Below are positions 18,029-35,940 of a stretch of DNA of 64,000 nucleotides, piece after piece (position 1 is the stretch's first letter; the number at the start of each line of letters is the position of its first letter). Under the pieces are notes generated by a model, which was not told where the DNA came from, did not search any database, and was given only the letters and a program-made list of their open reading frames with translations. Position numbers and translations under genes: made by a program. The DNA is from Bigelowiella natans CCMP2755 (taxonomy: Eukaryota > Protista > Cercozoa), in the NCBI GenBank assembly GCA_000320545.1, contig ADNK01000825.1, positions 62,001 to 126,000 on the forward strand, read 5' to 3'.

Positions 18029-18072
<44 letters not shown>

Positions 18073-20922
18073 GTACGGGAAAGAGTGCAAATAGGCGCAC
18101 GTGCTACTACTTCCATTACTGCTACTACCACAACTGCTACTCCTACTGCTGCCACTATATTGCATATTACGTATACTCATCATCATTATCATCACCGTCA
18201 TCATCATCATCATCATAATCATCTTCATCTAGGTGCTAGAGAGAGCCGAGCTTATATCGAATGAGCTGCTATGGGTGCTTTTGCGACTATCTTGCTGCAA
18301 GGAAGCTCTATATTCCATCCTTCGCAGACCGAAATCGGTCAATCTCATATGTAAGCTAGCAATATTGGGAACTACGTGGGTGCATGACAACACCAACAGT
18401 AGCAGCAGTAGTAGCGACTCTTCGTCCTCCTCTTTTTCGTCGTCGTCGTTGTCCCCGACAGGGGCAGGACATATCACAAGGCTGCTCGCACTACATATTT
18501 GCCGACGATTACTACCAATGGTAGATCCAACGGTGGTGCCCACGGTTGAAGGTAACGAGGAGGACGGGGAGAAGAAGAAGAAGAAGAAGAAGAATGCGGA
18601 ATTCTACCTCGGTCGGCAGCGGAGGCATCCTGCCTCGCAGTCGTCGTCGTCGTCGAAGAATGGTGACGCTGCTGCCGCTGCTATCGTTGATTGGAAACTG
18701 CTTGATACCACCCCTGAGGCGTTGTTGGCCGGAATCTTGAAGAGTGTGGCGGCATGCGACCCGCTGCTAATGACAACGACGACGACGACGACAAATAGTC
18801 TAGACTCAGAGGAACGAGGACCATCTTTGGCATCATCACCATCATCACCATCATCATCTCGTCTCCCTCTCGCCCCCTCCTCCTACCCCAAATCTCAACT
18901 GTTTTCTTGCGCCAACGAGGCCATATGCATCTACAGACGCCTCCTCGCGACGGACGCGTGGGCTCCCATGGCACTCGATGCCATGGAGGAAGCCTTAGAA
19001 CCGCTGCGAAGGAAAAAAACGACGCCAGGAATGATGGAGGAGAAGGAGGAGGAGAAGGAGGGGCCTGGAGAGGAAAACGATCAACAGCAACATGCTGCTC
19101 GTATGAAAACAAAGATGGAAAGACTGGTCGCGACGCTGCACATCCTAGGCGGCGGTTTCGACGTGATAACGGAGGGCAGTCAAGTTGTAGTGCGATACCT
19201 TGCTGAAGGCTCCTCTTCCTCTTCTTCTTCTTCTTCTTCTTCTTCTTCTTCTTCTTCTTTTCCAAACAATAGCAACGATCAGAAGCAGCGACAGCAGCAC
19301 GAAAAGCATGCTGCTGACAATGAGGACGGCGGCGGCTACGACAGCAACAAGATGCGCGGTGTAATCCTGTGCCTGTCCCCTCTAACCGCCCATATGCAGC
19401 ACCGGAGGCAAGGAGAGCAGGTGGTGGAGATTGACTGGGTAAGGTATTCCGCTGAGGTCGTTCCAACGGTGGAGTTCCCCTACAACGAGCTCAACCAGCT
19501 CCACTCATGCTCGTCGATGCAGCTCTCACGGATTCTTGACATCGTTGCCACGTTTTTTATCAAGACGAGGGAGGGCGGTGACGGCAGTGAGAGCGAGGCG
19601 TCAGCATGCTTAAGCCGAGAAACTCTACGGAAGAAAGCGACTGCAGCCGCTGCCACCTCCTCCTCCTCCTCCTTCTCAGTGGGGCAGCTGCTACAGCTTC
19701 TGTTCCCAAAGTACCTTCGTTTGCTATGCGGAAAGGCGATGGAGCCTGCACTCGTTGCAGGATGGGAAGGATCACGGTTCCCGATGTGCAGAGATACGAT
19801 CATCAAAACCGCCCTTCAGCCCGCCATCAGAAAACAGCCACTTGCAGCGGCAACAGCGCGCTCCCCGTCCTCCAACACAGCCCTGAACAAAGGCAGTATG
19901 GAGGAGGAGGTGGAGGAGGAGAAGAAGAACAGCAACAAGGAGAATGCTAGTAATAGTAGTACGAGCAGTAATCAATTTGGAGGCTTTGGCAGCAGTAGTA
20001 GTAACTCTGGAGACTTTGGCAGCAGTGGCGGTCAAAGCGGTGGTAACTCTGCACTTACACTTCTTCTTTCATAATTTCTGTATTGTTTTGTTTTCTTAAA
20101 AAACCATTGATTAAAAAAATAGTAATAAAATTGATATTTCTTTTAATATTGTAGTTTTTGGAAAATGAAAGTTATTCAAAGATATTCAAGTCTTGAACAT
20201 AAATTCCTCTTGATTGCAGGTGGAGGCTTTGGCAGCAGTAGTAACTCCAGACGCTTGTGCTTGTTTTTTAAGAATACCGGCACCTGTAGGTACGGGGTTA
20301 ACTGTCACTTCTCGCACGCTGCTGGTCCTGAGAGTACCAATGCGGTACCTAGGAATACTTTCAGTAGCTTTGACAACAAGAATAGTAGTAGCTCTGGAGG
20401 CTGGGGCAGCAGCAGTAGTAACTCTGGAGGCTTTGGCGGCAGTGGCGGTGGTAACTCTGCACTTACAATTTTTTCCCATAATTTCTGTATTGTTTTGCTT
20501 TTTTAAAAAACACTAATAAAAAAAAATTGTAATAAAAGTGATTTTTCTTTTAATATTGTAGTTTTTGGAAAATGAAAGTTATTCAAAGATATTCAAGTCT
20601 TGAACATAAATTCCTCTTGATTGCAGGTGGAGGCTTTGGCAGCAGTAGTAGTAACTCTGGAGGCTTTGGCAGCAGTGGCGGTCAAAGCGGTGGTAACTCT
20701 GCACTTACAATTCTTCTTTCATAATTTCTGTATTGTTTTGTTTTCTTAAAAAACCATTGATTAAAAAAATAGTAATAAAATTGATATTTCTTTTAATATT
20801 GTAGTTTTTAGAAAATGAAAGTTATTCAAAGATATTCAAGTCTTGAACATAAATTCCTCTTGATTGCAGGTGGAGGCTTTGGCAGCAGTAGTAGTAACTC
20901 TGGAGGCTTTGGCCCCAGAGGC

Positions 20923-20956
<34 letters not shown>

Positions 20957-22911
20957 CCAAAGAAGGGAGGACAGCAACAGATACAGGCAGTATCTTCGGT
21001 ACCATAACTCTGCTCGTGCAGGGGATAAACGAGGATTTCAAGGGTATGATGAAGAAGGAGGGGAACGATTATGTACAGCTTCTGGACGAATCTAACATAG
21101 ATAAATGGTGCGTGGGGGGAGCGGCATATGAAGCTCTGATTCTCCGTCTCTCGCACACGATAGCGTTGCTATTGAAACAGCAGCAGCAGCAGCAAGAACA
21201 GCAGATTCCCTCATCGTTGGTCCCTTCCGCAAAGATGATGATGATGAAGCTCATCACCGGTAACGAGGATGAAGAAAAGGGTGAAGATAGACTACAACCC
21301 TCAACACCTGAGAATAGTAAGCAGAAGACAGAGAATATGGAGCGCAAATCAAAACTGCGAGCCGCCGATCACTCCTTGTTTGGGGATTTTCAGCAGCAGC
21401 AGCAGCAGCAGCAATTTGCAGCCTCCGCGGATCCTTTTCTTCGCCCTCCTGCTGCTCCTCCCCTGCCCGTGTTCGCAGGGCTCATCGGCGACCCGCGCTG
21501 CTACTTCGAGCAAAGCTTTGCTGACTCCATATCCTGCTCCTCGTCCTCCTCGCAGGCGGTGGAGGAGAAGTTGGAAGCAAAGAGCAGCGGCAACAACAAC
21601 AACAACATCAACAACTACAACAACAATGTCGATACTGCTGCCATGTTATCTGGGATCCGACTCCAAGCCTACTCGTCCCTTCTTAGCTCGCTCAATTGTG
21701 CAGAGCAGCGCCCTCGAAATCAGCACAAGGAGGGTGGCGAGCAACACGCCGCCACGGCTCCTTACAAGAAGTTGCATCGCCTCCGCAATTACACTGAGAT
21801 TGAACTAGGCCATTCGGCGTCTGTTTGTGAGAACGCGTTGTACTTCAGCGGCAGCGAAGGCGCGGGAGGGCAACAATACCGAGGAGGAGACCAAACAATT
21901 CGGCCGCACGGCGAGCATACCGACGACACGAGTGATAATGATTTCTTGGAGAAGCGAGATCCCAGTGCGTGCGTAGTCGTTCCATTACTCGTTGAAACGC
22001 TCTTAAGATCCGGCCAGGTAGCGTATACATCAACGGTATTAGATGGGTGAGGCGAAGAAGTTGGAGAAGAAGAAGAAGAAGTAGTAGTAGTAGTATGGTG
22101 AAAAGACGGAGTGGTGGTGGTAATGGTGGTGGCATCTACTAGATAGGTCAGGAGTGGGTGCGTGTAAGTATTCACAATGGATTTTAGAATGGGCGGGGGG
22201 AGAGGGGGGGAGGGAAGGGATACCGAAGGTTTTGTTTTGTGTGTAGGATCGAGGGCCTTGTTTTTAATATTTTGTCCTGTATAGGATTTTGATTGCTTTG
22301 AAACCTCCCATCAATTGCTGCCACGGCTTCCTAGCTTACTTGTTATCATTATCACTATCATCATCATCATCATCACTTTTTTTGATCCTGCCTCATCAAC
22401 ACAAGGGGGCAACCTTCTCGATGTGTGTCTGGCTGGCGCGCGGCACCTCTTCTGGCCGACTCCTAGCGTTTCGAGCGGAAGGAAATACGACTGGAAGCAG
22501 CGGTGGTGGCGGCTGTGGGTTGTTCGGCGATGGGTGGTTCTCCGTCAACGCACGTGTGAGCGAAGAAGGCCGTGATATCGTCGACGGCAAAGAGCCGATC
22601 ATAATCCTAGAGGTGGAGATGTACAAAAGCGGAGGAGGGAGGGGAAGAGAACGCGCCAGTATCATTACGAGTCTTCTTCCTCCTCCCCCCCCTCCCAAAT
22701 CTGCAAAGCATCCTGAGCAATATCTAAGAACAGAGGCCTGGTATCATATTAGCGTAAACATCAGGAGGGTTGATGGCGCTCCTAGTGCTAGCCTCGCAGT
22801 TTTCGTCAACGGTGAGGAGTGGAAGTTTCAGCAGTAGTAGTAGTAGGGAGTAGTAGTAGCTGCAGAAGGTGTAGAGATCTAGCAGCATCTGCAGTGAACA
22901 ACATAACGATC

Positions 22912-22947
<36 letters not shown>

Positions 22948-22948
22948 A

Positions 22949-22982
<34 letters not shown>

Positions 22983-23195
22983 TTATATACAACGGGTCGT
23001 CTTTTCTTGGCAGACAACACGTTGAGGCTTAATCGTGATGATCACCTCCTGATTCATACTAAAATCCCCAGCGTTCTTAGAAGTGTCTTCTAGCAGATAC
23101 ATGCCTCAATCATGCGTGGACAACACAGCCATTTCCTTATATCCATCGGGGGAAATTGCACCCACCAAACTCGCTGACAATGATACTTACCGCAG

Positions 23196-23268
<73 letters not shown>

Positions 23269-24206
23269 ATCATATATCGATAGGCGAACAATATGGGCGC
23301 AATGTATCCATTCGTCTACTGCCTCCGCGGCCAAGGCACAATAAGAACTCCATGAGGAAGGAGAAGGAGGAGAATGTGAAGCAAAAAGGGGACAACAAGT
23401 TCATTTCTTCTTCTTCTTCTACCAATGCGACGCTGTTAGAATGGGAAGAATTTGGGCTAAAAAGGCTGCATGCCGTGTTTGCTCACGGATTGACGTGTAA
23501 GATCCACACTCTCCTCGTCTTTGGTGCAACGGTTCCAAAGCAGGCCCTTAGGCGGCAAAGGCAGCAGCAGAAGAGGCAGCATCAGTCGTTCGTATCCTCC
23601 TTCCCCTTACTTGCAAATACGAGGAAATTGGTGTCTGCATACCGAGCAACCGTGGCTGCCACACAGCACCTTAGAGGAGGAGGAGGAGGAGGAGGAGGAG
23701 GAGGAGGAGGAGGTGGAGGAGTATCCCCAACCACCACGGCGGAGGAGAAGCATGATAATGATAATAAGATGATACCGATGAAAGCGGTTGTAATTACTCC
23801 TCACAAGATGGAGGCGGCCATCGAGCACAGAGGCATTGCACGACTTGACTTGCCGCAGCTTGCTTCTGCACCTCCCAATTCGAATATCTGCTCTCCTCGC
23901 TCACTTGAACATGTGCGCGGGTTTTCTCCGTCATTGCTGTGGAGTCCGCTCGTTGCATGTTCCTACAGCTTCGTCACCAAGTTGTCGACAGGCCAACGCT
24001 TGCTACCTGAGACAGCAATGGTTCCTCTGATTCATGTGTTATCTAGTGACGATGAAGAGGATGATGATGATGGTGAACATGATGATGTCGATCAGAACTG
24101 AATTTGGAAGAAGGATACTGTCAAAAGATAATGCACATAAAGACCAAAATTACTCGGCTTCTGCCTTGTTACAGAGCAAACCTATGCGTGTTTTCCATTC
24201 ACAATT

Positions 24207-24250
<44 letters not shown>

Positions 24251-24451
24251 CACACTAGCACAGCAAACGACGGTGTCCTTTTGAATGTGTCATATCAGGT
24301 GAAGACGCATGGCGGGGAGACCATGTTCGGCGTTGCGCTCTCGAGTGATGATGTGCTCACGGTACAGATACCGCCACAACTTGCAAGCTTCCTGAGGGAG
24401 AAGAACAAGAACAAGGCTGCTTCTACAGGGGGAGGTGGAGGAGAAGGAGGT

Positions 24452-24501
<50 letters not shown>

Positions 24502-25916
24502 CAGTTTTGATTCTTCTGGCATTATGCCCAGCGATCGGCAAAAGGAAAAAATAAATAACGTTACAAGTGCTACCATAGTGTTTTTCCAAGGCTAAAAATG
24601 GGGTGGTTTACCACGAGGGGGATCATCGATAGCCGTATGTCAGTCCAGTTTGAAAATTGCGGAAAGAAGAAGAAGCGACGTACAACGCGGTCATTTTATG
24701 CTGACGTGGTACTGGTAATCTAGGGGACTTATTCGGCAATAATAGTGGTGGTGGCTTCGGCTTAGGTTCGAGCTCCGGTTCGGGATCAGCAGGTTCTCTT
24801 GGTTCAGGTTCTGGTTCAGGCTGGGGTTCCGGTTCCGGTTCTGGCTCAAGCGACAACGGCGGTGGTAGAAACAACAGCGGTGGCTTTAGCTTCGGCGGTG
24901 GTAGAAACAACGGCGGTGGCTCTAGCTCCGGCGGTTTTGGCTCTGGCTTCGGCGGTGGTGGAAACACCGGCGGTGGCTCTAGCTCCGGCGGTTTTGGCTC
25001 TAGCTTCGGCGGTGGTGGAAACACCGGCGGTGGCTCTAGCTCCGGCGGTTTTGGCTCTGGCTTCGGCGGTGGTGGAAACACCGGCGGTGGCTCTAGCTCC
25101 GGCGGTTTTGGCTCTGGCTTCGGCGGTGGTGGAAACACCGGCGGTGGCTCTAGCTCCGGCGGTTTTGGCTCTGGCTTCGGCGGTGGTGGAAACACCGGCG
25201 GTGGCTCTAGCTCCGGCGGTTTTGGCTTTGGCTTCGGCGGTGGTGGAAACACCGGCGGTGGCTCTAGCTCCGGCGGTTTTGGCTCTGGCTTCGGCGGTAG
25301 CTCTAGCTCCGGCGGTTTTAGCTCTAGCTTCGGCGGTGGTGGAAACACCGGCGGTGGCTCTAGCTCCGGCGGTTTTGGCTTTGGCTTCGGCGGTGGTGGA
25401 AACACCGGCGGTGGCTCTAGCTCCGGCGGTTTTGGCTCTGGCTTCGGCGGTAGCTCTAGCTCCGGCGATTTTAGCTCTAGCTTCGGCGGTGGTGGAAACA
25501 CCGGCGGTGGCTCTAGCTCCGGCGGTTTTGGCTCTGGCTTCGGCGGTAGCTCTAGCTCCGGCGGTGGTGGAAACACCGGCGGTGTCCTTGGTAGTGGTAG
25601 AAACAACGGCGGTGGCTCTAGCTCCGGCGGTTTTGGCTCTAGCTTCGGCGGTGGTGGAAACACCGGCGGTGGCTCTAGCTCCGGCGGTTTTGGCTCTGGC
25701 TTCGGCGGTGGTGGAAACACCGGCGGTGGCTCTAGCTCCGGCGGTTTTGGCTCTAGCTCCGGCGGTGGCGTTGGTGGTGGTAGAAACATCGGCGGTGGCT
25801 TTAGCTTCGGCGGTGGTGGAAACAACGGCAGTGTCTTCGGCGGTGGCTTTAAGACCACGGAGGTGGATAATATATGATGATGACCAAGTAGTATTATGCG
25901 TGTTTGTGCGTGTCTC

Positions 25917-25950
<34 letters not shown>

Positions 25951-26229
25951 TTGTAGTAGTAGTAGTTGTGTCAGATAAGAGTGGCGAATACACAGGAAAC
26001 AGTATATCCACTCCACACTCCATCACGCCACACTTTAAAAATGGAATTGTGAAATTAGTGGTGGTACCGTAGTCTGAGAACCAACCATTAACAACAACAA
26101 CAACAAATTAGGAGCGGCATCGGGGAAAATTCGGCTCCAGCCACGTCGAGCTACACCAGAGCATTACGAAAATGCACCAGTACAGTAGAATCCCATTCGA
26201 AAATATCAATCTTAAGAAATCTTTCAATA

Positions 26230-26261
<32 letters not shown>

Positions 26262-29200
26262 GTGCAGTTTAATTTTCACGACGCTATAGTAGATATGAAT
26301 GTACGATAAACCAACATCCGCCATTCCTCTGCTTATTTCGAGAGCAGGCATGGATGATGCATCTCCCACAACCAAAAATGGGAATTAAAGACTGCAACGT
26401 TACAGCACTTTGTTTCTTGCCTAACTACTACAGCAACAACTACTACTACAACTACTATGCTACTGCTGCTGCTACATACAATAATCAGCACCTTTGTTTC
26501 TTTCTCTTTTATCATCAAGGTATAGCCGATGTAACTTTGAGGAACTGCGTTTGAAAGATTACCGCAACGTAATCTAATACACGCTGACGAGATATTAAAA
26601 ACAGAAGGGAGGGGTTAGATGGGGGTGGGAGGTGGGGGGGGTAAATGAATGTGAGCTGTAGTAATGTATTTGTCATAGCGAGAGCATCGATGATTCTGCT
26701 TGGGATGCAACATTCATTTTTTGTGCTACGAGACCCTTTCATATTCTCCGAAGCAGAAAAATATGTTTTTTGGGAATTGTACACGTATCTGCAATTATGC
26801 GAGGAGAAAGCTCGAAGAATCTTGTTTATGATAGCATGCGTTGCGCTACGAATAACATTCTAGGGGCAAAAAGGAGGGGCTAACCATGGGGGCGGTCTTG
26901 GTGGCGGCAGTGCCTTCGGCTCGAAGTCGAAAGGTGAATGATGCATTTTGGAAAAGGGAGGGGGGGGGGAGCTGCTGGGAATGTTCATTCAATCCATCTG
27001 CATATAGTAAAACGCTATTTCTTAATATCCACTTAATCAGGCTTTGGCAGCAGCTCTGGTAGCAGTTGCGGCAGCGGTGGAGGTCTACGAATCGAGATGG
27101 AACTTGTACCGATCTGCGACAAGAACGTGAAACGGTCATCGTCTCAGGTGTCTAGTAGCAAAGGCTTTCTTTGGCTTGGGCCAGGTGGAGGTGCTGATGA
27201 TGACGAACGAATCCTAGATTTACAAGCCGATGGCACCATCAACATCCATAACAAGGGCAAACGAGGAGGAGGAGGAGGAACACCGAAGGCACCGGAGAAA
27301 AAAGAAAAGAAGAAGGGAGAAGAGGAATCAATGCCGTTATCATTCGCAGAAGGAACATCGTCACAAAAGACGAAAAAGGACAACAACAACAACAACAGCA
27401 ACAAAGCTGGGGGATTATTATTTAGTGGGTGTACGCTTAGGCTGCAGGGCCCTTCTTCTTCTTCTTCTTCTTCTTCTTCTTCTTCTTCTTCTTCATCACT
27501 GACATCTCCTCAATCACCATCATCTTCGGATAGCAATGAGAAGTTGCTAAAACAGAAAGGTGGTCATCACGAAGATGCTACTGCTGCTCCTGCTCCTGCT
27601 GCATTAACTACTACTTCTAACGAGGAGAATGATGCCAAGATCCCACCAGCTGCCGCTGTCAGCACCAACGAGAGCAAGTGGGGATTCTTTTCCGGATCAA
27701 CTGATGGCGGGGACACTTCGTCCCCCTCGGCCGTTACTTCCGGTACCCTTCCCGTTGAAACAGTAGTTTCTAGTAATAGTTGCAGTAGGTGATTATCGCG
27801 TGTGGAGGGAGATGATTGATGACCCTTACTCATATATACTGCAACAACCTTACTAGCCTGCTAGAATGTTGTGCCTAGAATATTGCCACCTGACTGTGTG
27901 TATCCTTATTTTCTCCTGTAAAAAGACGTGGCCACTTCCTATCCGGAACGAGCAAAGACCGAAGACTACAAAGAAGGGGTTCTGTTCTCCTTTGAAGATG
28001 AGCTCCAGCATTCGAGATTGGATCCTGTGACCCTCCAGCAGACGCCATCTGGCAAGGACAGTGATAATGGTGATGGGGGGGATACTGCTAGCGGCGGTGC
28101 TTATCACCCGCCTACTCATCGCGTGATAATTCTCCTATGTGCCACCTCTGATCGAGTTGCTGTCCAAGTCAACGACAAAGTGAGAGGGTTCTCTCGGTCA
28201 TCGTTGGGCGATATTCTCAACGAGGAGAAGAAGGGGAGGGGGGTATGGAATAACGGCACCGCCAATACTCTTCGGGTGGGTGGGTTCGGTGTGCTCATCC
28301 ACTCGTTAACGCTCAGTACATTCGACGAGGATATCAGCCACGTGGTCCAACAGAATATTGCAAACGTGAAAGGCGAGAGGGGAACGGTAGCAGCAAACCC
28401 TACGCCGTCTAAACATACTTTTGGAAATATGCAGCAGCCGGGGTCGGGGGGGAGATGGGTTAGGGCTAGTGGGGGTCAAGACAGTTCTAACTCCCAATCT
28501 TTCGGTGATCCTATCGCTGCAAAGAACGACGCTGTCGATCAAAGAGCGGATGATTTTCGCATCTCGGGAAGAGACTCGTCGCAAAGCTCCAGCCCTAACA
28601 GCCCTGCTTCGCCCTCCTCCCCTTTCTCCGCACAAACCCTATCATCCCCAACACGCCAAACATTTGGCAATTTCAGTAGCGCCACCAATATCGAGGAGCG
28701 GAAGCAGCAGCAGCGGCGGCGAGAACGAAGGCGCAGCGTAGTGCGACCTGCAAGCTCCAGGCCAAAGTCGTCGCAGTGCTCCCCGAAACCGCCGCAACCG
28801 CTTTCCAGAGTCCTGACAACTCTACAGGTAGAAGATGAGGAGAAGCTGCAGCAGCAGCACAGTGCCGTATACAGCGACAAAACTCATGGTGGTGGTAGTG
28901 GTGGTAGTGGTGGTAGTGGTGGTAGTGGCAGCGGTTTTGTGCTGCAGGCCTTTGAATCTATCTGGTTGGCCGCTGCCGCTGGTAGTGGCGATGGTGGGGA
29001 AATTTCCTCCTCCCCCCTGTCTTCTATTTCCCTTCCGCGCCTGCAGGGGGCTAGAGGAGGGGATGCTCCGTGCCTACAAGAAGACGTACATTCCTCAGCA
29101 CCAAAGTCGGAGGAGAAAGCGCAGCGATTGCAGGCAGAGACCAAGGTAAAGCTGCTAAGAGCATGGAGCGGGCTACCATTGTCGTGGTGTGCTTTCGCAC

Positions 29201-29804
29201 TGCACATGAGCCAGGGAGACTTGGCATCCGCATCGTCGTGGTTGTTGCTTCCCGCGACCACTCTGTTGGCAAAGCGCCTGGACCTTGCCGCCAACCTACA
29301 CAGAAAGTATGCGGCTGCTGCGGGATACTCAGTAATGAGATGTTTCGAAGCTGTCTTGAGCTGCCATCCCATTCTCCCCGCTTCATCATCGTCACCATCA
29401 CATGCAACAGCAACTCGAGACGATTCCTGCTATCATGAGGACGACGATGTCGACGTCATGGCCTGCCTTCGGTGGTTATTGCAGCGGGGAGTCGACGCCG
29501 ATACCGACACCAGCAACAATGGAGAAGGAGGCGGGAAACCAGCTGGTGCGGAGGGATGTGTGGAGGACGATCACGTAGAAACGAAGACGAAGGATGACGG
29601 AAAGATGGGTAGTAGTAATTGTTAGTTATACCTCAATACCTAAATATATATATATATATATATATGTATTTGTATGATTTACTTCAAGAGCCGCATGTAT
29701 ATGAGCCAGCCAATGATTCTCTTGCTGCCTTCTTCCAGTGTAATCATAGAATTATCATTATCACTGCATCTATAATCATCACTTTCATCTACCTCCCATT
29801 GTGC

Positions 29805-29875
<71 letters not shown>

Positions 29876-30869
29876 GTCTCCCTCCTCTATTTTGCTTCTA
29901 TGCCCTCGATAATGCTACGAATGCGCAACCAACCCGCAGGATTCCTGGATGTTTCCAACACGCCAGTACCAAGTTTTGGGGGTCTTTCGTGGTCGTCGTC
30001 GTCGTCGTCGTCATTTTCAGCCGCACAGGGGCTTCCCTCCTGGGCGACCTTAGCGGGTATATTCACTTTCAACGACAGCAAAGCACAACCACCTAGAGGC
30101 AATGGAAGCAGCAATTTCAACTTTAGATCTGGTTGGGGAGCTAGTAGAAGTAGTAGTGGAGGTAGCGGTGGCAGTGGTAAGAGCAATAATTCGTCGTCAT
30201 CATCATTATTATCCTCATCATCGTTGCACGGTCACTATCTGCTGCCAAAGCTGCTGGAGGCGCGGTCATCATCAGCGCTCTGCCACCTAGACGAGCATGA
30301 TGCGGGCACTGATGGCAAACGGGGAGAGGAGAAAGGCTGCTGCAGCCTCCTCCCCCTCATGAATGTGCTCTATCTTGACCGGCTGGACGAGTGCCTGGCG
30401 AAGTTGCAGGGAACCGATATTAGCAAGCTCGTCGCCGCATTGGAAAAACTGTGCTTCTGGCTCACAGTCATCAGATGCCGTCAAATTGCTCTGAGTCTCT
30501 TGGTAAGGAAGGCAGCAACGATTACAACATCCCCTCCACAACTCGACGAAGGCGATACTCCCTCCGCCTCTGCGAGTCGCTATTCTCCTCCGCGCAGGTC
30601 GCACCGTGATGCACGTAAAAGAAGAGATCAAGGGGGTGATGATGATCATGATGATGGCACGCCAACGGTGAAGGAACTGAAGGAAGTGAAGGAGGAAAGC
30701 ACCAGAAAGAACCAAAAACGGGAGTTGCAGCAGCTCCTGCGGATCCGGCAGGATGTGCGCGCGGTTAGAATTTTGGCAGAATTCTTCCTTGAAGCCCCAG
30801 TGCCGGCCACGCCGTCATTGTCAACATTCTACAGCGAAAACTTCTTGCCTGAAGGTAGTAGAAGTTGCG

Positions 30870-30900
<31 letters not shown>

Positions 30901-31650
30901 CATGGTAGTGAGTCTCTCTCTCTCTTTTGAACGTCGGTGCCGCTGTTTAATTGCGCGACTGCTCATTTGTGTTAGGGAGGGGTAGCAGTGATGCCTCATG
31001 CATGCATGTTCAAATCTAGCAAACACTCTCTTCCCGGTGGGGGAGTGAATCAACACAAAAACAAAGTCGAAAGTCACCTTCTTGTCGCATGATGGCAGAC
31101 TCACCCGCCCATCGCCCATCTGGGTCACTTCAATTCTTCTGCGCTTAGATTGTGTTGGCTCCCCCCCCCCCCCCCTCCCTCCATCTCCTCTCTCATCCAT
31201 ATATCGTGCTCAGGTTTACTGCTATATCGTGGATCCTGGTCTCCACCTGCTATGGACGAAGCCGGGAGGCTCAGTGTCTTGCATATCGTTCTTGGCCTGA
31301 TCACTCGTTTCCTGACCGCCTACACCGAACATAGGGAAGCGGGGAATGAGGGCGGGCAGGATGGACGCAACAACTACAACGAGGATGATCTCGAAGACAA
31401 AGCAGCAGCTACACTTGCTGCCAAGGGATATAGGGCCCAAACCATTAAGACACTTACTGATACAGCTATGATTTTAATGCTTTCGCTTCTTCCCTGCCAG
31501 CTTAAGATCGCTGCAGCTGCTTGTGGTGGTGACGGTGGCGGCAGTGACGTGCTTCAGCCGATCTGGGCACAGCTCTCACACACCGCGGAAAACCTGGGTT
31601 TGTGCGCCTTCGATCTGTTGGAGAACGCTCATATGGCAACGACGAGGATG

Positions 31651-31685
<35 letters not shown>

Positions 31686-34050
31686 CAGTGATCTTGATGA
31701 TAGTGGTAGGTTGTTTTTCCCTGCCTTCCTGAGCTCGGCGTGGTCCCGAGTCCTCGTCCAAGTGCTCCGAGCTTACAAGAAGAGCAAGAAAACAGGCAAA
31801 TCAAATATTTATAGTTGTGGTTTTGGCTCGCCTAAAGAGAAAGACGGCGATTACTTCCAAAATATCGACAAACGGAACTTGCTTCTATGCAAAGCACTAG
31901 CGCTCCGGCTGGCACGCATCGCTCACATTCGATCGGTGCGCTTCTCCCGCAAAACCCTTAGCGATATCCGCGAGATTGTGGAGCGGATGAAGACGCGCTC
32001 GGCTGTTGTCTATGCATGCGTCGAAATATTGGCTGCCCGTCATCTCTACGGCAATAATAGCGGCAATGGGGGATCTAGTAGCAGCAGTAGCAGCAGTGTA
32101 TTGCCGCCCTCTCCATCTAGCATATCCCCCCCCGCTTATATCGTGCGGGTCGCCAAGTTCATACGAATAGGCAAGATTCTCCTGAACACCCGGATGGCAA
32201 GTAAGCTGAGGAATCTCCCCGAAGAATATGCCACAGCTTCCGCTCCTAAGCACAATGATCACAAGAATAATAGTTCCTCTACACTCCCTGGCTCCGGTTT
32301 CAGCGGTCTCAGCGGTTTCGGCACCGGTTTCGCCTCGACGTCGACGATTCCTAGCAGCGGGGGCAGCGGAAATGCGAAGGAGAAAAAGAAGCAACAGGAT
32401 AGTGCTGGGGCAGCGCTACGGACCTATAGCTTTGAAGATGATTTGCAGCTAATAAAGCGTAGCGGTCATAATGCGACATCTTCATTGGACATGAAGAGAC
32501 TGAAGCAACTGCAGCACTGCGCTAGTATTCTTCAGGAAATTTGGCCGCTGATCAATACCACGCTCCCAAGGTGTGCTCTACTATTAGTGCTATTAGTAGA
32601 AGTAGAGTAGCAGTAGCAGTAGTAGTAGTAGTAGTAGTAGTAACAGCAGTTTTGCGTTTTTCATCATGTATTATCGTAGCTGGATAGCGATGGCAGAAGC
32701 TAGAGCATCTATGCAGCACTAACGTGAACAAATTTAGTGAATATAGGAACTCCTGCGCGCGGGCACAAGAAAATATACATTATCTTCATGATCACCGTTT
32801 CTCCTTCTTCTTCTTCTTCTTCTTCTTCTTCTTCTTCTTCACGATGCAGGGGTGCGTCGATTCTGAGCGACATGGCACGTGATCTTCGTTGGTTGATTCC
32901 CTTCGCCACTCGCACCCAGTACTGGAAACCGCAAAATGAGGTGTCGCGCGCCATGCTCGAGATTCTGCTGGATCGTGGCAAAGCAAGGAAATGGATGGCA
33001 GAAACAACATCGCAACATAACTCATCCTCCTCATCCCCCTCCTTCCCCTCTAGCGATTCACAGTCGCATGCACAATCATCACCATCATCATCTTCTTCTT
33101 CTTCATCATCACGCATGTCCTTGCGGTCCTCCGATTCTCTGTTCGAGCAGCTCTATCGTAAGATCATGCACTGGTAGTCGCCTCTCCTCCTCCAAACTAC
33201 TTACAGTACAGTATTAAGTAGCAGCAGCAGCAGCAGCAGCAGCAGCGGGGGTGGTAGATGAGATGGTAGAATCAGTGAGATTGGCAGGCCGAACGGTGTC
33301 AAATTTTGATGTTTATTCTGGCAACCTATTCTCGTCTCGCAGTGTCTTGCTGCAAGTTTATTTAGTTGTTTGCTGCCCCACCACAGGCCGGCTCGATCTT
33401 ACCGTGTGAGCAGGCACGTCCGGATATTTAAAGTGAATCTTAGCTTCCACCAATCTCCCCCCCCCCCCCCCTTTTTTCCACCTCTTCTTCTTGCTTCTCC
33501 TCATACCTCCTACGTTGCAATATTTTAATGGACCGTCTAGTATCATACTTAAATTTCATCCTCACTCCCTCCCCCCCCCCTCCTCAGGTAAGATTTGTGG
33601 GAGAAGGCGGTATAGATAGTGGAGGGCTGTATAGAGAATGCTTCTCGGAGATATGCAAGGAGCTCATGAACCCCGCGCTGGGGATCCTTATCCCTTGTCC
33701 TAACTCGAAGGTAGTAGTAGTAGTAGTATTAGTAACAAAACACACATCAGGCACATATGCTACTACAACTACCACTACTACTAAGACTATCACTCTTTCC
33801 AACCCAACTATTGTTATATCGATGTGGTATCTTTGTCAATGTGGTGGTCTCTCAAATCCCCCCTCCTCCTTTCGACCTCTTCCTCTTATCTCCCGTGCAG
33901 AATGACGCAGGGCGGAACCGCGATACTTTCGTACCCGCGCCTTCAAAAGCGATGCAGAAGTTCCGGTTTCTGGGCCGTCTGATGGGGCTTGCTCTGCGTA
34001 GCGGCGAGTTGCTGTCCTTGCGAATGGCTCCTGCGGTATTATCATTATTA

Positions 34051-34090
<40 letters not shown>

Positions 34091-34642
34091 GACGGGGCAC
34101 CACACCGCTGCCACCACAACAAGTCACCACCGCCGCGAGTGAGGAGAAGAAGCATCTTTACTTTAGCTGGCTGCCCTGCCGAAATTTATACACTGTCGTG
34201 TAAGCGCATATGGTGGTGATTGTGAGGCTTCAATGTCGTATGGATTTCATCTGAGGCAGTCTTCATCCTCTCTCTCCCCTCCTCTTATCCCCATCCTCAC
34301 CATCATCACCATCATCATCACCATCGTCATCATCATCATCATTATCTCTGCCATGATCCAGGTGTGGAAAGAGCTCACGTTGCAAGCCGTCACTAAGGAG
34401 GACATGAGGGGCGTTGACGTGCTGTCATTTGGCATGATAGATGGCATGCGGAACACGAAGTCGAAGGAGATGTTTGACCATACATTTGATGACGAGGTGT
34501 TCGCTGGGTTGCGGACGGACAGCAAACGCTGCCCACTGGTGCCGCACGGAACAAGAATCCCGGTCACTTTCTCGAGGCGACTCACGTATGCTTCATATCT
34601 CTACGCTTTCCGGAAGCATGAGTTTACCGCACAGGTGTGTTT

Positions 34643-34696
<54 letters not shown>

Positions 34697-35616
34697 TGTG
34701 CGCGCGCGCGTAAGGAGGGGGGGAGGGGAGGAGGCGTGTTCGAACAGTGCAGCAGATAGATAGCCAAGGATAGTGAAATAATGACGATGCATGATGATAT
34801 CGGTGTCTATACTATCCAGATTTCTGCGATGAGAATGGGCCTTGCAGAGGTTGTCCCTAAGACTGCTCTTGTCCTATTCGATGGGGCGGAATTGCAGGTG
34901 GGGTCTCCAGTATGCAGTGATAAAAAAAGAAGAAGAAGAGGGGGACTCGCTAGGGAGGAAGAAGAAGGGGAATACAATACTAAGGCTGTGAAGATGTTTT
35001 CAATAGGATACCGCACCATCCGATGCAACACTCTGCACTGTTTATTGATTCTTCCCCACTTCCAAAAATTTCAAAATATATATATTTGTATACGTAATAG
35101 ATGTGAGCAATAATAATTTGCTGACGGGTTTGAATTTTTGTTATCCTTGGCCATATCCTTGGACAACAAATGTCATCGCCGTTTTTGGTTGGGAATGATA
35201 TTTTATAAAATAATTTTCTCCCAAATTTTCTGTCTTTCTTATGCACATTCATAGAAAGCTGTGTGCGGAGAGACTATCATCGACTTGGAGGTCTTAAAAC
35301 GCCACACAACGTACGAAGGCTACTCAGGCCTTGAGCCTGTCGTCCAGTTCTTCTGGCAGGTGAGATGTGAATGGGGAACATGATAATGGGTTTGATAATA
35401 CCGATGAGCGGAAATCATTGAAGCATGCCGTAGCCTGGTGATGGTTTATTGATATGGTTCTCTGCCTTGTTTACTCATGTGCGGCTTTACATTCAACAAG
35501 GCCTTGAGGAGATTTGACAACGATCTGCGCGTCAAGTTCTTGCAGTTTGTATGGGGAAGGTCCCGACTTCCGCAAAACGAATCCATGTGGGAAACTAGCA
35601 TGAGGGTACTTTGGTC

Positions 35617-35685
<69 letters not shown>

Positions 35686-35940
35686 GTTATTGTTGCAGTG
35701 GTGATAACGCAGCGCCAATCATCTCACATGTCCCCGTGCTACGTGGTCTCCCTCTTACTCGATTCTCGATTATCATCGTAGGTTCATTCTTGCGGCGGGG
35801 CACGTAATCCGGACGCGCGCCTTCCCCTCTCTCACACTTGTTTCTTCCAAATAGATTTACCCAGGTACACAAATGCCGAAGCCTGTTACAACAAACTCAA
35901 GATAGCCGTGGAAGAAACTGGAACGTTCGAAATGGGCTAA
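8565..35940 (+). CDS. Giant multi-exon HECT E3 ubiquitin ligase (large HERC/HECTD-like HECT) with RRM-like, CCCH, LamG/ConA-like, FG-repeat, GLEBS and UBA-like modules
   Basis: The C-terminal HECT is clear: RIFK|VRFVGEGGIDSGGLYRECFSEICKEL...FRFLGRLMGLALR...VVQFFWQ|AL...FLQFVWGRSRLP...LPLSHTCFFQIDLPRY...GTFEMG* (stop 35938-35940). Long same-strand exons run continuously from ~9.5 kb. Junctions were checked in frame from ~17 kb to the HECT domain. The start at ATG 8565 and the junctions between 9 and 17 kb are less certain. Confidence 0.85.
10088..10283 (+). other. RRM-like segment within the HECT ligase
   Basis: VIELQLTQLAATSEEIKLALSFYGEVVCVK...MWTVKFCSPESAAMAAREI resembles the RRM pattern EExLxxxFxxYGxV...VxFxxxExAxxA. 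Confidence 0.45.
19979..20912 (+). repeat. Three near-identical AT-rich introns (20043-20219, 20451-20626, 20693-20869) with repeated GGFGSSSSNS exon ends
   Basis: Each intron starts GTAACTCTGCACTTACA and ends GTTATTCAAAGATATTCAAGTCTTGAACATAAATTCCTCTTGATTGCAG. Lengths are 177, 176 and 177 nt; all are phase 1. Confidence 0.95.
20258..20317 (+). other. CCCH zinc finger (C-x8-C-x5-C-x3-H) in symmetric exon 20220-20450
   Basis: CLFFKNTGTCRYGVNCHFSH, flanked by GGFGSSS repeats. Confidence 0.9.
24724..25862 (+). repeat. Coding 57-bp minisatellite exon encoding FG repeats (GGGGNTGGGSSSGGFGSGF)n
   Basis: Unit ggcggtggtggaaacaccggcggtggctctagctccggcggttttggctctggcttc; 12 GGAAACACC cores counted, plus shortened and variant units. 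Acceptor TAG at 24721-24723, donor GT at 25863; the frame is open throughout. Confidence 0.9.
26112..26933 (+). other. GLEBS-like (Rae1/Gle2-binding) motif on micro-exons 26112-26179, 26520-26568 and 26864-26933
   Basis: Spliced translation ...ELHQSITKMHQYSRCNFEELRLKDYRNGQKGG matches the Nup98/Nup116 GLEBS pattern (H/F)QxI(S/T)xMxxYxxxSxEELRxxDYxxxxKG. All junctions are GT-AG and phase-compatible. Confidence 0.85.
29140..29482 (+). other. One or two UBA-like three-helix motifs in the HECT ligase
   Basis: KVKLLRAWSGLPLSWCAFALHMSQGDLASASSWLL, and a weaker AGYSVMRCFEAV...DVMACLRWLL. Confidence 0.55.
33387..35940 (+). other. HECT catalytic domain exons; catalytic Cys codon at 35839-35841
   Basis: The last exon, 35782-35940, translates VHSCGGARNPDARLPLSHTCFFQIDLPRYTNAEACYNKLKIAVEETGTFEMG*, matching the LPxSHTCF HECT motif. 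Confidence 0.95.

Follow-up and report, generated by a model that had tools for sequence, protein, structure and literature searches.

A predicted giant HECT ubiquitin ligase gene with a nucleoporin-like FG–GLEBS cassette in Bigelowiella natans

To what extent can a ubiquitin ligase carry, within its own chain, the equipment of a nucleoporin? The question is raised by a 64,000-nucleotide (nt) stretch of the 91-Mb Bigelowiella natans assembly (contig C2912:62001-126000, called the window here and numbered from its first letter), on whose plus strand a HECT ubiquitin ligase domain is preceded by phenylalanine–glycine (FG) repeats, a GLEBS motif of Nup98 type and a CCCH zinc finger. An earlier note on this DNA had placed all of these modules in one gene. 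Considering their frames and splice phases, this one-gene architecture of a HECT ligase with a nucleoporin cassette is probable, and we put at roughly 0.55 the probability that at least one mRNA isoform encodes a single polypeptide with CCCH, FG, GLEBS and HECT. Canonical, in-phase links between the cassette and its flanks speak for the architecture; on the other side stand the modules, all of which can be skipped, and the failure of our protein searches to find an orthologue.

Modules and reading frames of the locus

First, how far does the gene extend? Between ~9.5 kb and 35.94 kb, the plus strand holds a close succession of open frames of 150-613 codons each, separated by short gaps, a density that fits one intron-rich giant gene, which would span at least ~9.5 kb to 35.94 kb and encode, in ~6,000 codons, a giant HECT ubiquitin ligase. 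A stop-free path through the locus exists, as found by a dynamic-programming gene model that was crude, misplaced the HECT and GLEBS exons and was used solely for this purpose. Junction phases were checked by hand from 20042 to 20870, from 24449 to 27041 and across the HECT exons, and within these intervals the phase-consistent GT-AG path of the earlier note holds; across 22047-24264 and 27789-33588, what was established is that GT-AG junctions able to keep the frame exist. The checked junctions around the finger (20042/20220, 20450/20627, 20692/20870) and around and within the FG–GLEBS cassette (24449/24724, 25862/26112, 26179/26520, 26568/26864, 26933/27041) each have GT-AG borders and keep the phase, and FG-type codons run unbroken into long unique open frames within exons 18233-20042, 20870-22047 and 27041-27789.

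At the 3′ end of the gene, five separate open pieces together span positions 4-305 of the 306 in the Pfam HECT profile (4-69, 63-151, 186-222, 219-247 and 263-305), with the gap at 151-186 filled, by eye, by exon 34820-34897. The exon borders were set by hand with conserved motifs as anchors, and the joined exons read like the HECT consensus. The stop codon lies 4 residues past the conserved HECT Phe, which leaves the HECT domain, with both lobes covered, at the extreme C-terminus. The last exon aligns with the solved C-lobes of HECW2, SMURF2, Rsp5, NEDD4, HUWE1 and Tom1 with the catalytic Cys, encoded at 35839, in register, and the LPxxHTC motif is kept (LPLSHTCFF versus LPRAHTCFN in HECW2; expectation value (E) 2.3e-7).

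Some 8 kb upstream of this domain lies the FG-repeat exon, whose 379 residues include 34 FG dipeptides; Gly accounts for 50% and Ser for 24%, and 9 residues are charged. The exon's repeats recur with periods of 57 and 153 nt, both multiples of 3. Its FG frame has no Met, and thus the cassette alone cannot start a protein. One may ask whether this repeat at 24.7-25.9 kb encodes FG at all, rather than being a non-coding 57-nt minisatellite or belonging to the minus strand, where the reverse complement of the array (24623-26026) is an open, proline-rich frame of 467 codons (PPELEPPPVFPPPP type). The repeat units are near-identical and a second plus-strand frame is open as well, as one would expect of either alternative; the FG frame, however, is the only one in phase with both the GLEBS exons and the two flanking exons, whereas the minus-strand frame starts in a translated microsatellite and is not kept in the sister copy of the cassette described below. 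That frame is most likely a by-product of repeat composition, and we attach almost no credence to a repeat that does not encode FG.

The GLEBS motif is split between two micro-exons, and the splice 26179/26520 rebuilds it, clearly recognisable by eye, as I-T-x-M-x-x-Y-x5-E-E-L-R-L-x-D-Y. Contig C3011 carries another B. natans GLEBS of identical spacing, and pattern and spacing both agree with the human Nup98 motif (..ITAMKEYESKSLEELRLEDY..). Back-translated, the EELRxxDY core occurs 4 times in the 91-Mb genome, as compared to 1 occurrence of a reversed control. When PF21240 was run on single exons, which are short for this profile, no match was obtained in the window, and the motifs on contigs C3329 and C3011 scored 14.7 and 16.8 bits against a cut-off of 27. 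The FG exon, the two GLEBS micro-exons and the Gly/FG micro-exon behind them form a four-exon cassette of 1326 nt, that is, 442 codons, with phase 1-1 borders.

About 4 kb upstream of the cassette lies the zinc finger, whose exon matches zf-CCCH at 33.3 bits against a cut-off of 20.5 (E 4.5e-8). The finger has the pattern C-x8-C-x5-C-x3-H and shares its frame with FG flanks, a GGFG head and a GGWG/GGFG tail; the final ~27 codons of the large exon before it (19961-20041) are likewise of FG type (QFGGFG..DFG..). A 243-nt unit, composed of a 66-nt FG coding piece and a 177-nt intron, is present in three tandem copies at 19977-20869, the outer two of which (A and C) are 99% identical, and it is because of this triplication of exon plus intron that the finger exon and the FG-bearing exons around it share the same acceptors and donors. 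In a genome-wide comparison, the unit and the CCCH exon were found at this locus only, and exon 27922-29622 has no other copy either. The four features that the earlier note had read here, namely the finger with its FG exons at 20220-20692, the FG exon, the split GLEBS rejoined in phase and the intact HECT domain, are thus borne out.

Between and around these modules, other regions are less distinct. The stretch previously called LamG-like has a language-model feature score of 0.92 to Laminin_G_2/G_3 clusters, its ten best named matches all belonging to one clan, but no Pfam match at E<0.1. The UBA-like stretches, for which there is no Pfam match, are predicted to be helical by single-sequence AlphaFold with a mean confidence (pLDDT) of 48.7, which is too low to use, and Atlas features for 31216-32568, ahead of the HECT domain, yielded nothing informative. 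Microsatellites of (TG)n, (TA)n and (GA)n lie inside or border many introns throughout the gene (for example 18030-18070, 22900-23270, 24210-24245, 24460-24500, 25916-25950, 35650-35685); several of these repeats, if read through, would translate as CVCV, IYIY or RERE. The coordinates of all features are collected in Table 1.

Table 1. Features of the predicted ligase gene, in window positions.
Feature	Position	Strand	Basis or remark
Large coding exon, 603-codon open frame	18233-20042	+	donor GTAAC at 20043
CCCH zinc-finger exon, 231 nt, phase 1-1	20220-20450	+	zf-CCCH PF00642
Pure FG exon, 66 nt, phase 1-1	20627-20692	+	
Exon with FG head (GGFG..GGFG), then ~390 unique codons	20870-22046	+	3′ end approximate
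LamG/concanavalin-like region	22286-22834	+	language-model features; exon limits approximate
Unique coding exon ending in Gly-rich run, phase 1 at 3′ end	24264-24449	+	fits acceptor at 24724
FG-repeat exon (GGFGSGFGG type), 379 codons	24724-25862	+	
GLEBS micro-exon 1 (..VELHQSITKMH + two bases CA), phase 0 to 2	26112-26179	+	
GLEBS micro-exon 2 (G + YSRCNFEELRLKDYRN), phase 2 to 0	26520-26568	+	
Post-GLEBS Gly/FG micro-exon (GQKGG..SAFGSKSK + G), phase 0 to 1	26864-26933	+	
Exon opening GFGSSSG.., then unique sequence	27041-27784	+	3′ end approximate (27784/27789)
Large exon with two candidate UBA-like helical stretches (~29143-29496)	27926-29620	+	
Pre-HECT exon (..LRWLIPF.., ..FEQLY)	32850-33157	+	
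Possible 17-nt linker exon	33387-33403	+	would join pre-HECT exon to HECT in phase
HECT domain, seven phase-0 exons and TAA stop (35938-40)	33588-35940	+	Pfam HECT (PF00632), manual exon refinement
HECT exons	33588-33710, 33901-34035, 34362-34634, 34820-34897, 35255-35359, 35501-35605, 35782-35937	+	GT-AG borders, phase 0

Copies and relatives of the cassette in the genome

Second, where might such a cassette have come from? Contig C3329 (2,032 nt), read on its minus strand, aligns to window positions 24498-26944 at 78-85% identity, introns included, and keeps every splice site as well as the 70-nt length of the last micro-exon. Its GLEBS exon carries an in-frame 6-nt insertion (..YKRSDKNFEELRWEDY), which adds two residues relative to the canonical spacing in the window, and its FG part is far shorter, which indicates that the array in the window has expanded. 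The 5′ end of the copy is FG coding sequence that ends in a GT donor, whereas the same point in the window is a (GA)n run followed by GC. Both ends of C3329 lie in simple repeats, and neither the contigs of neighbouring number, C3328 and C3330, nor the Nup98 contig C903 showed any similarity to or overlap with it.

Considering that this sister cassette sits on an unplaced contig of 2 kb ending in simple repeats, and that unit copies A and C beside the finger are almost the same, it could be suspected that the 243-nt units at 19977-20869 or the cassette borders were misjoined during assembly. The window contains no N, however, the two cassettes are 15-22% different and hence not collapsed into one, and the reading frames pass cleanly through all borders. 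We regard an assembly artefact as very improbable.

A second Nup98-type GLEBS was found on the plus strand of C3011 (~1930-1992 and 2405-2500), where ..EEIHHSITAMPEYCG is followed by KSFEELRLEDYKYHGK.. (SITAMPEYCG, KSFEELRLEDY). Its intron sits at a different position from that in the window, it may lie at the N-terminus of its gene, and the contig, 5.2 kb long, shows no FG repeats. Two further candidates, a PF21240 match on C1915 and an EELRKHDY match on C943, look spurious. In a genome-wide scan the Nup98 autoproteolytic domain (PF04096) was confined to contigs C903 and C2723, with none in the window. The gene on C2723 (3813-5660) consists of one 616-codon exon, which contains degenerate FG-like repeats but lacks a GLEBS. 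The domain on C903 (463-1005), which ends in ..KVPHF, begins ~460 nt from the contig start, so that the assembly lacks the N-terminal part of this protein; Nup96 is found on C2508. Two lineages each of Nup98 and Rae1 have been reported from chlorarachniophytes (PMC6411479).

A Nup98-type gene is a plausible source of the cassette. We propose that exon duplication or shuffling built symmetric exon modules, of phase 1-1 and in two sets, into the middle of the ligase gene. The first set would be the CCCH exon between 66-nt FG exons that were duplicated along with their introns; the second would be the 1326-nt unit, which resembles the Nup98 N-terminus in its FG array, GLEBS and short FG tail, has a diverged sister at another place in the genome and contains the recently expanded FG array.

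One polypeptide and its alternatives

Third, are the cassette and CCCH exons used? We infer that they are included in at least one mRNA isoform. The donor sites of the cassette resemble those of the HECT exons, and the plus-strand coding density leaves no gap that would mark a gene boundary.

Several observations weigh against a single polypeptide. Where GT and AG sites are many, a path that keeps the frame is easily found by chance. The CCCH exon, the 66-nt exon and the cassette can each be skipped with the frame kept, and 24449 joins directly to 27041 in frame. The central 57-nt FG units are almost identical, their only three variable sites are all non-synonymous, and exons and introns have diverged to a similar degree between the window and the sister copy; taken together, these differences bear no signature of purifying selection. 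The central array is young and recently expanded. Exon 27922-29622 returned 0 matches in a HMMER search of 1.84 billion representative proteins, and 27040-27789 and 18233-20041 returned 0 matches in a word-index protein search whose length filter excludes giant proteins. The GLEBS micro-exons, of 22 and 16 residues, gave no match when queried singly against PDB and Pfam, being too short to do so. Lastly, if the intron at 26934 is retained, the frame stops after two codons, at TGA 26940-42, and the next exon offers its first in-frame ATG at 27097. Even if the architecture is correct, its significance is limited by a young FG array and by a gene without detectable relatives outside the HECT domain.

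Some of these points can be read together as the mark of a passive insertion, in which the FG–GLEBS cassette, and possibly the CCCH exon too, would be a recent nucleoporin-type duplicate in a phase-1 intron of the HECT gene, usually skipped or decaying, such that the mature ligase lacks it. The existence of the sister copy on C3329, the cassette length of exactly 442 codons between phase 1-1 borders that a join of 24449 to 27041 would bypass in frame, the young array with no synonymous bias, and the GC in the window at the point where the sister copy still shows the ancestral donor, all fit such an insertion. Against it, the exon before the cassette ends, and the exon after it begins, in Gly/FG-type coding sequence, every splice site is intact, the canonical GLEBS spacing is found in the window and not in the sister copy with its two extra residues, and the same gene has another, separate group of FG exons 4 kb upstream. 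On balance, a routinely skipped or decaying duplicate seems to us unlikely.

Alternatively, the locus may comprise two genes: an upstream one of ~9.5-26.9 kb that contains the CCCH, FG and GLEBS modules and ends at the TGA reached by read-through of the donor at 26934, and a HECT ligase that starts at ATG 27097. This arrangement would leave only ~155 nt between the genes, across an interval in which the coding density is unbroken. Moreover, 27041-27096 encodes an in-frame GFGSSSG.. directly behind a good acceptor of matching phase. We consider a division into two genes decidedly unlikely, and a single ligase gene that includes the modules in at least one isoform remains our preferred reading.

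Known counterparts and meaning

Finally, how does such a ligase compare with known systems? The order of an FG array, a GLEBS with the ITxMxxY...EELRLxDY pattern and spacing, and more Gly/FG sequence is that of the Nup98/Nup116 N-terminus. Unlike in Nup98/Nup116, the autoproteolytic domain and the Nup96 part are absent from the window and lie on other contigs, the repeats are GGFG/SGFG with 50% Gly rather than GLFG, and the module stands in the middle of a HECT ligase. For want of an autoproteolytic domain, the locus does not qualify as a Nup98 gene; judged by its sequence features, it appears to be a HECT ligase that has borrowed a nucleoporin module. The likeness to Nup42/NUPL2 (hCG1) that the earlier note had drawn holds insofar as a single CCCH finger adjoins FG repeats; it is otherwise generic. 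The C-x8-C-x5-C-x3-H pattern is a generic one too, and the finger is internal here, as opposed to N-terminal there. The nearest functional precedent is RanBP2/Nup358, a giant FG nucleoporin with zinc fingers and SUMO E3 ligase activity at the pore. It shares with the predicted protein the giant size and the combination of FG repeats, zinc finger and E3 domain, and differs from it in acting as a SUMO E3 via IR1-M-IR2 rather than a HECT domain, in having RanBP2-type fingers and in lacking GLEBS.

Among ligases, HUWE1/Tom1 and the class I HECTs are likewise very large and mostly helical proteins that have their HECT domain at the C-terminus; LamG-type and possibly UBA-type modules, for which the present locus has candidates, also occur. 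In a survey of HECT ligases that includes B. natans, class I members carry Laminin_G3/SPRY, UBA domains also occur on HECTs, and pore-type zf-RanBP fingers are found in KIAA0614-family HECTs of Phytophthora and Tetrahymena; in contrast to the present locus, no FG repeats, GLEBS or zf-CCCH are mentioned there on any HECT (PMC3673628). BuGZ/ZNF207 unites zinc fingers, a GLEBS and a phase-separating low-complexity region in one protein and is linked to a HECT ligase, Ubr5, through its turnover (PMC4602037); in BuGZ, however, the fingers are of C2H2 type, the partner bound is Bub3, and the ligase belongs to a different protein. Literature searches on GLEBS with HECT or with E3 ligases yielded no protein combining GLEBS and HECT; the earlier note, too, knew of no HECT ligase with its own FG–GLEBS module. 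The combination of HECT, FG, GLEBS and CCCH thus appears to be new, while HECT ligases and Nup98-type modules are each known.

With the exons in use, the ligase would have both a cohesive FG domain and a site on which the WD40 export factor Rae1 (or Bub3) could dock, and these would bring its HECT domain to nuclear pores or to particles bound by Rae1. Such docking and a pore-associated role may be envisaged. More tentatively still, and in our estimate doubtful, the ligase might itself be nucleoporin-like: its own GLEBS would bind Rae1, its own FG domain would enter the FG phase of the pore and its CCCH finger would contact RNA, while messenger ribonucleoprotein or pore components would be ubiquitylated during export, making it a ubiquitin counterpart of RanBP2/Nup358 that arose from Nup98 exons shuffled into a ligase gene. 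As the alga has two lineages each of Rae1 and Nup98, one for the host and one for the nucleomorph, such a ligase could work in either compartment.

What the locus means depends on the fate of these exons. If they are skipped, a duplicated nucleoporin fragment sits silently in an intron of a ligase gene. If they are used, the locus would represent a clean and recent domain gain by phase 1-1 exon shuffling with a donor-like copy still in the genome, and the product would be, to our knowledge, the first known HECT ligase with its own FG domain and Rae1-binding motif, in which ubiquitylation would be joined directly to the nuclear transport machinery.

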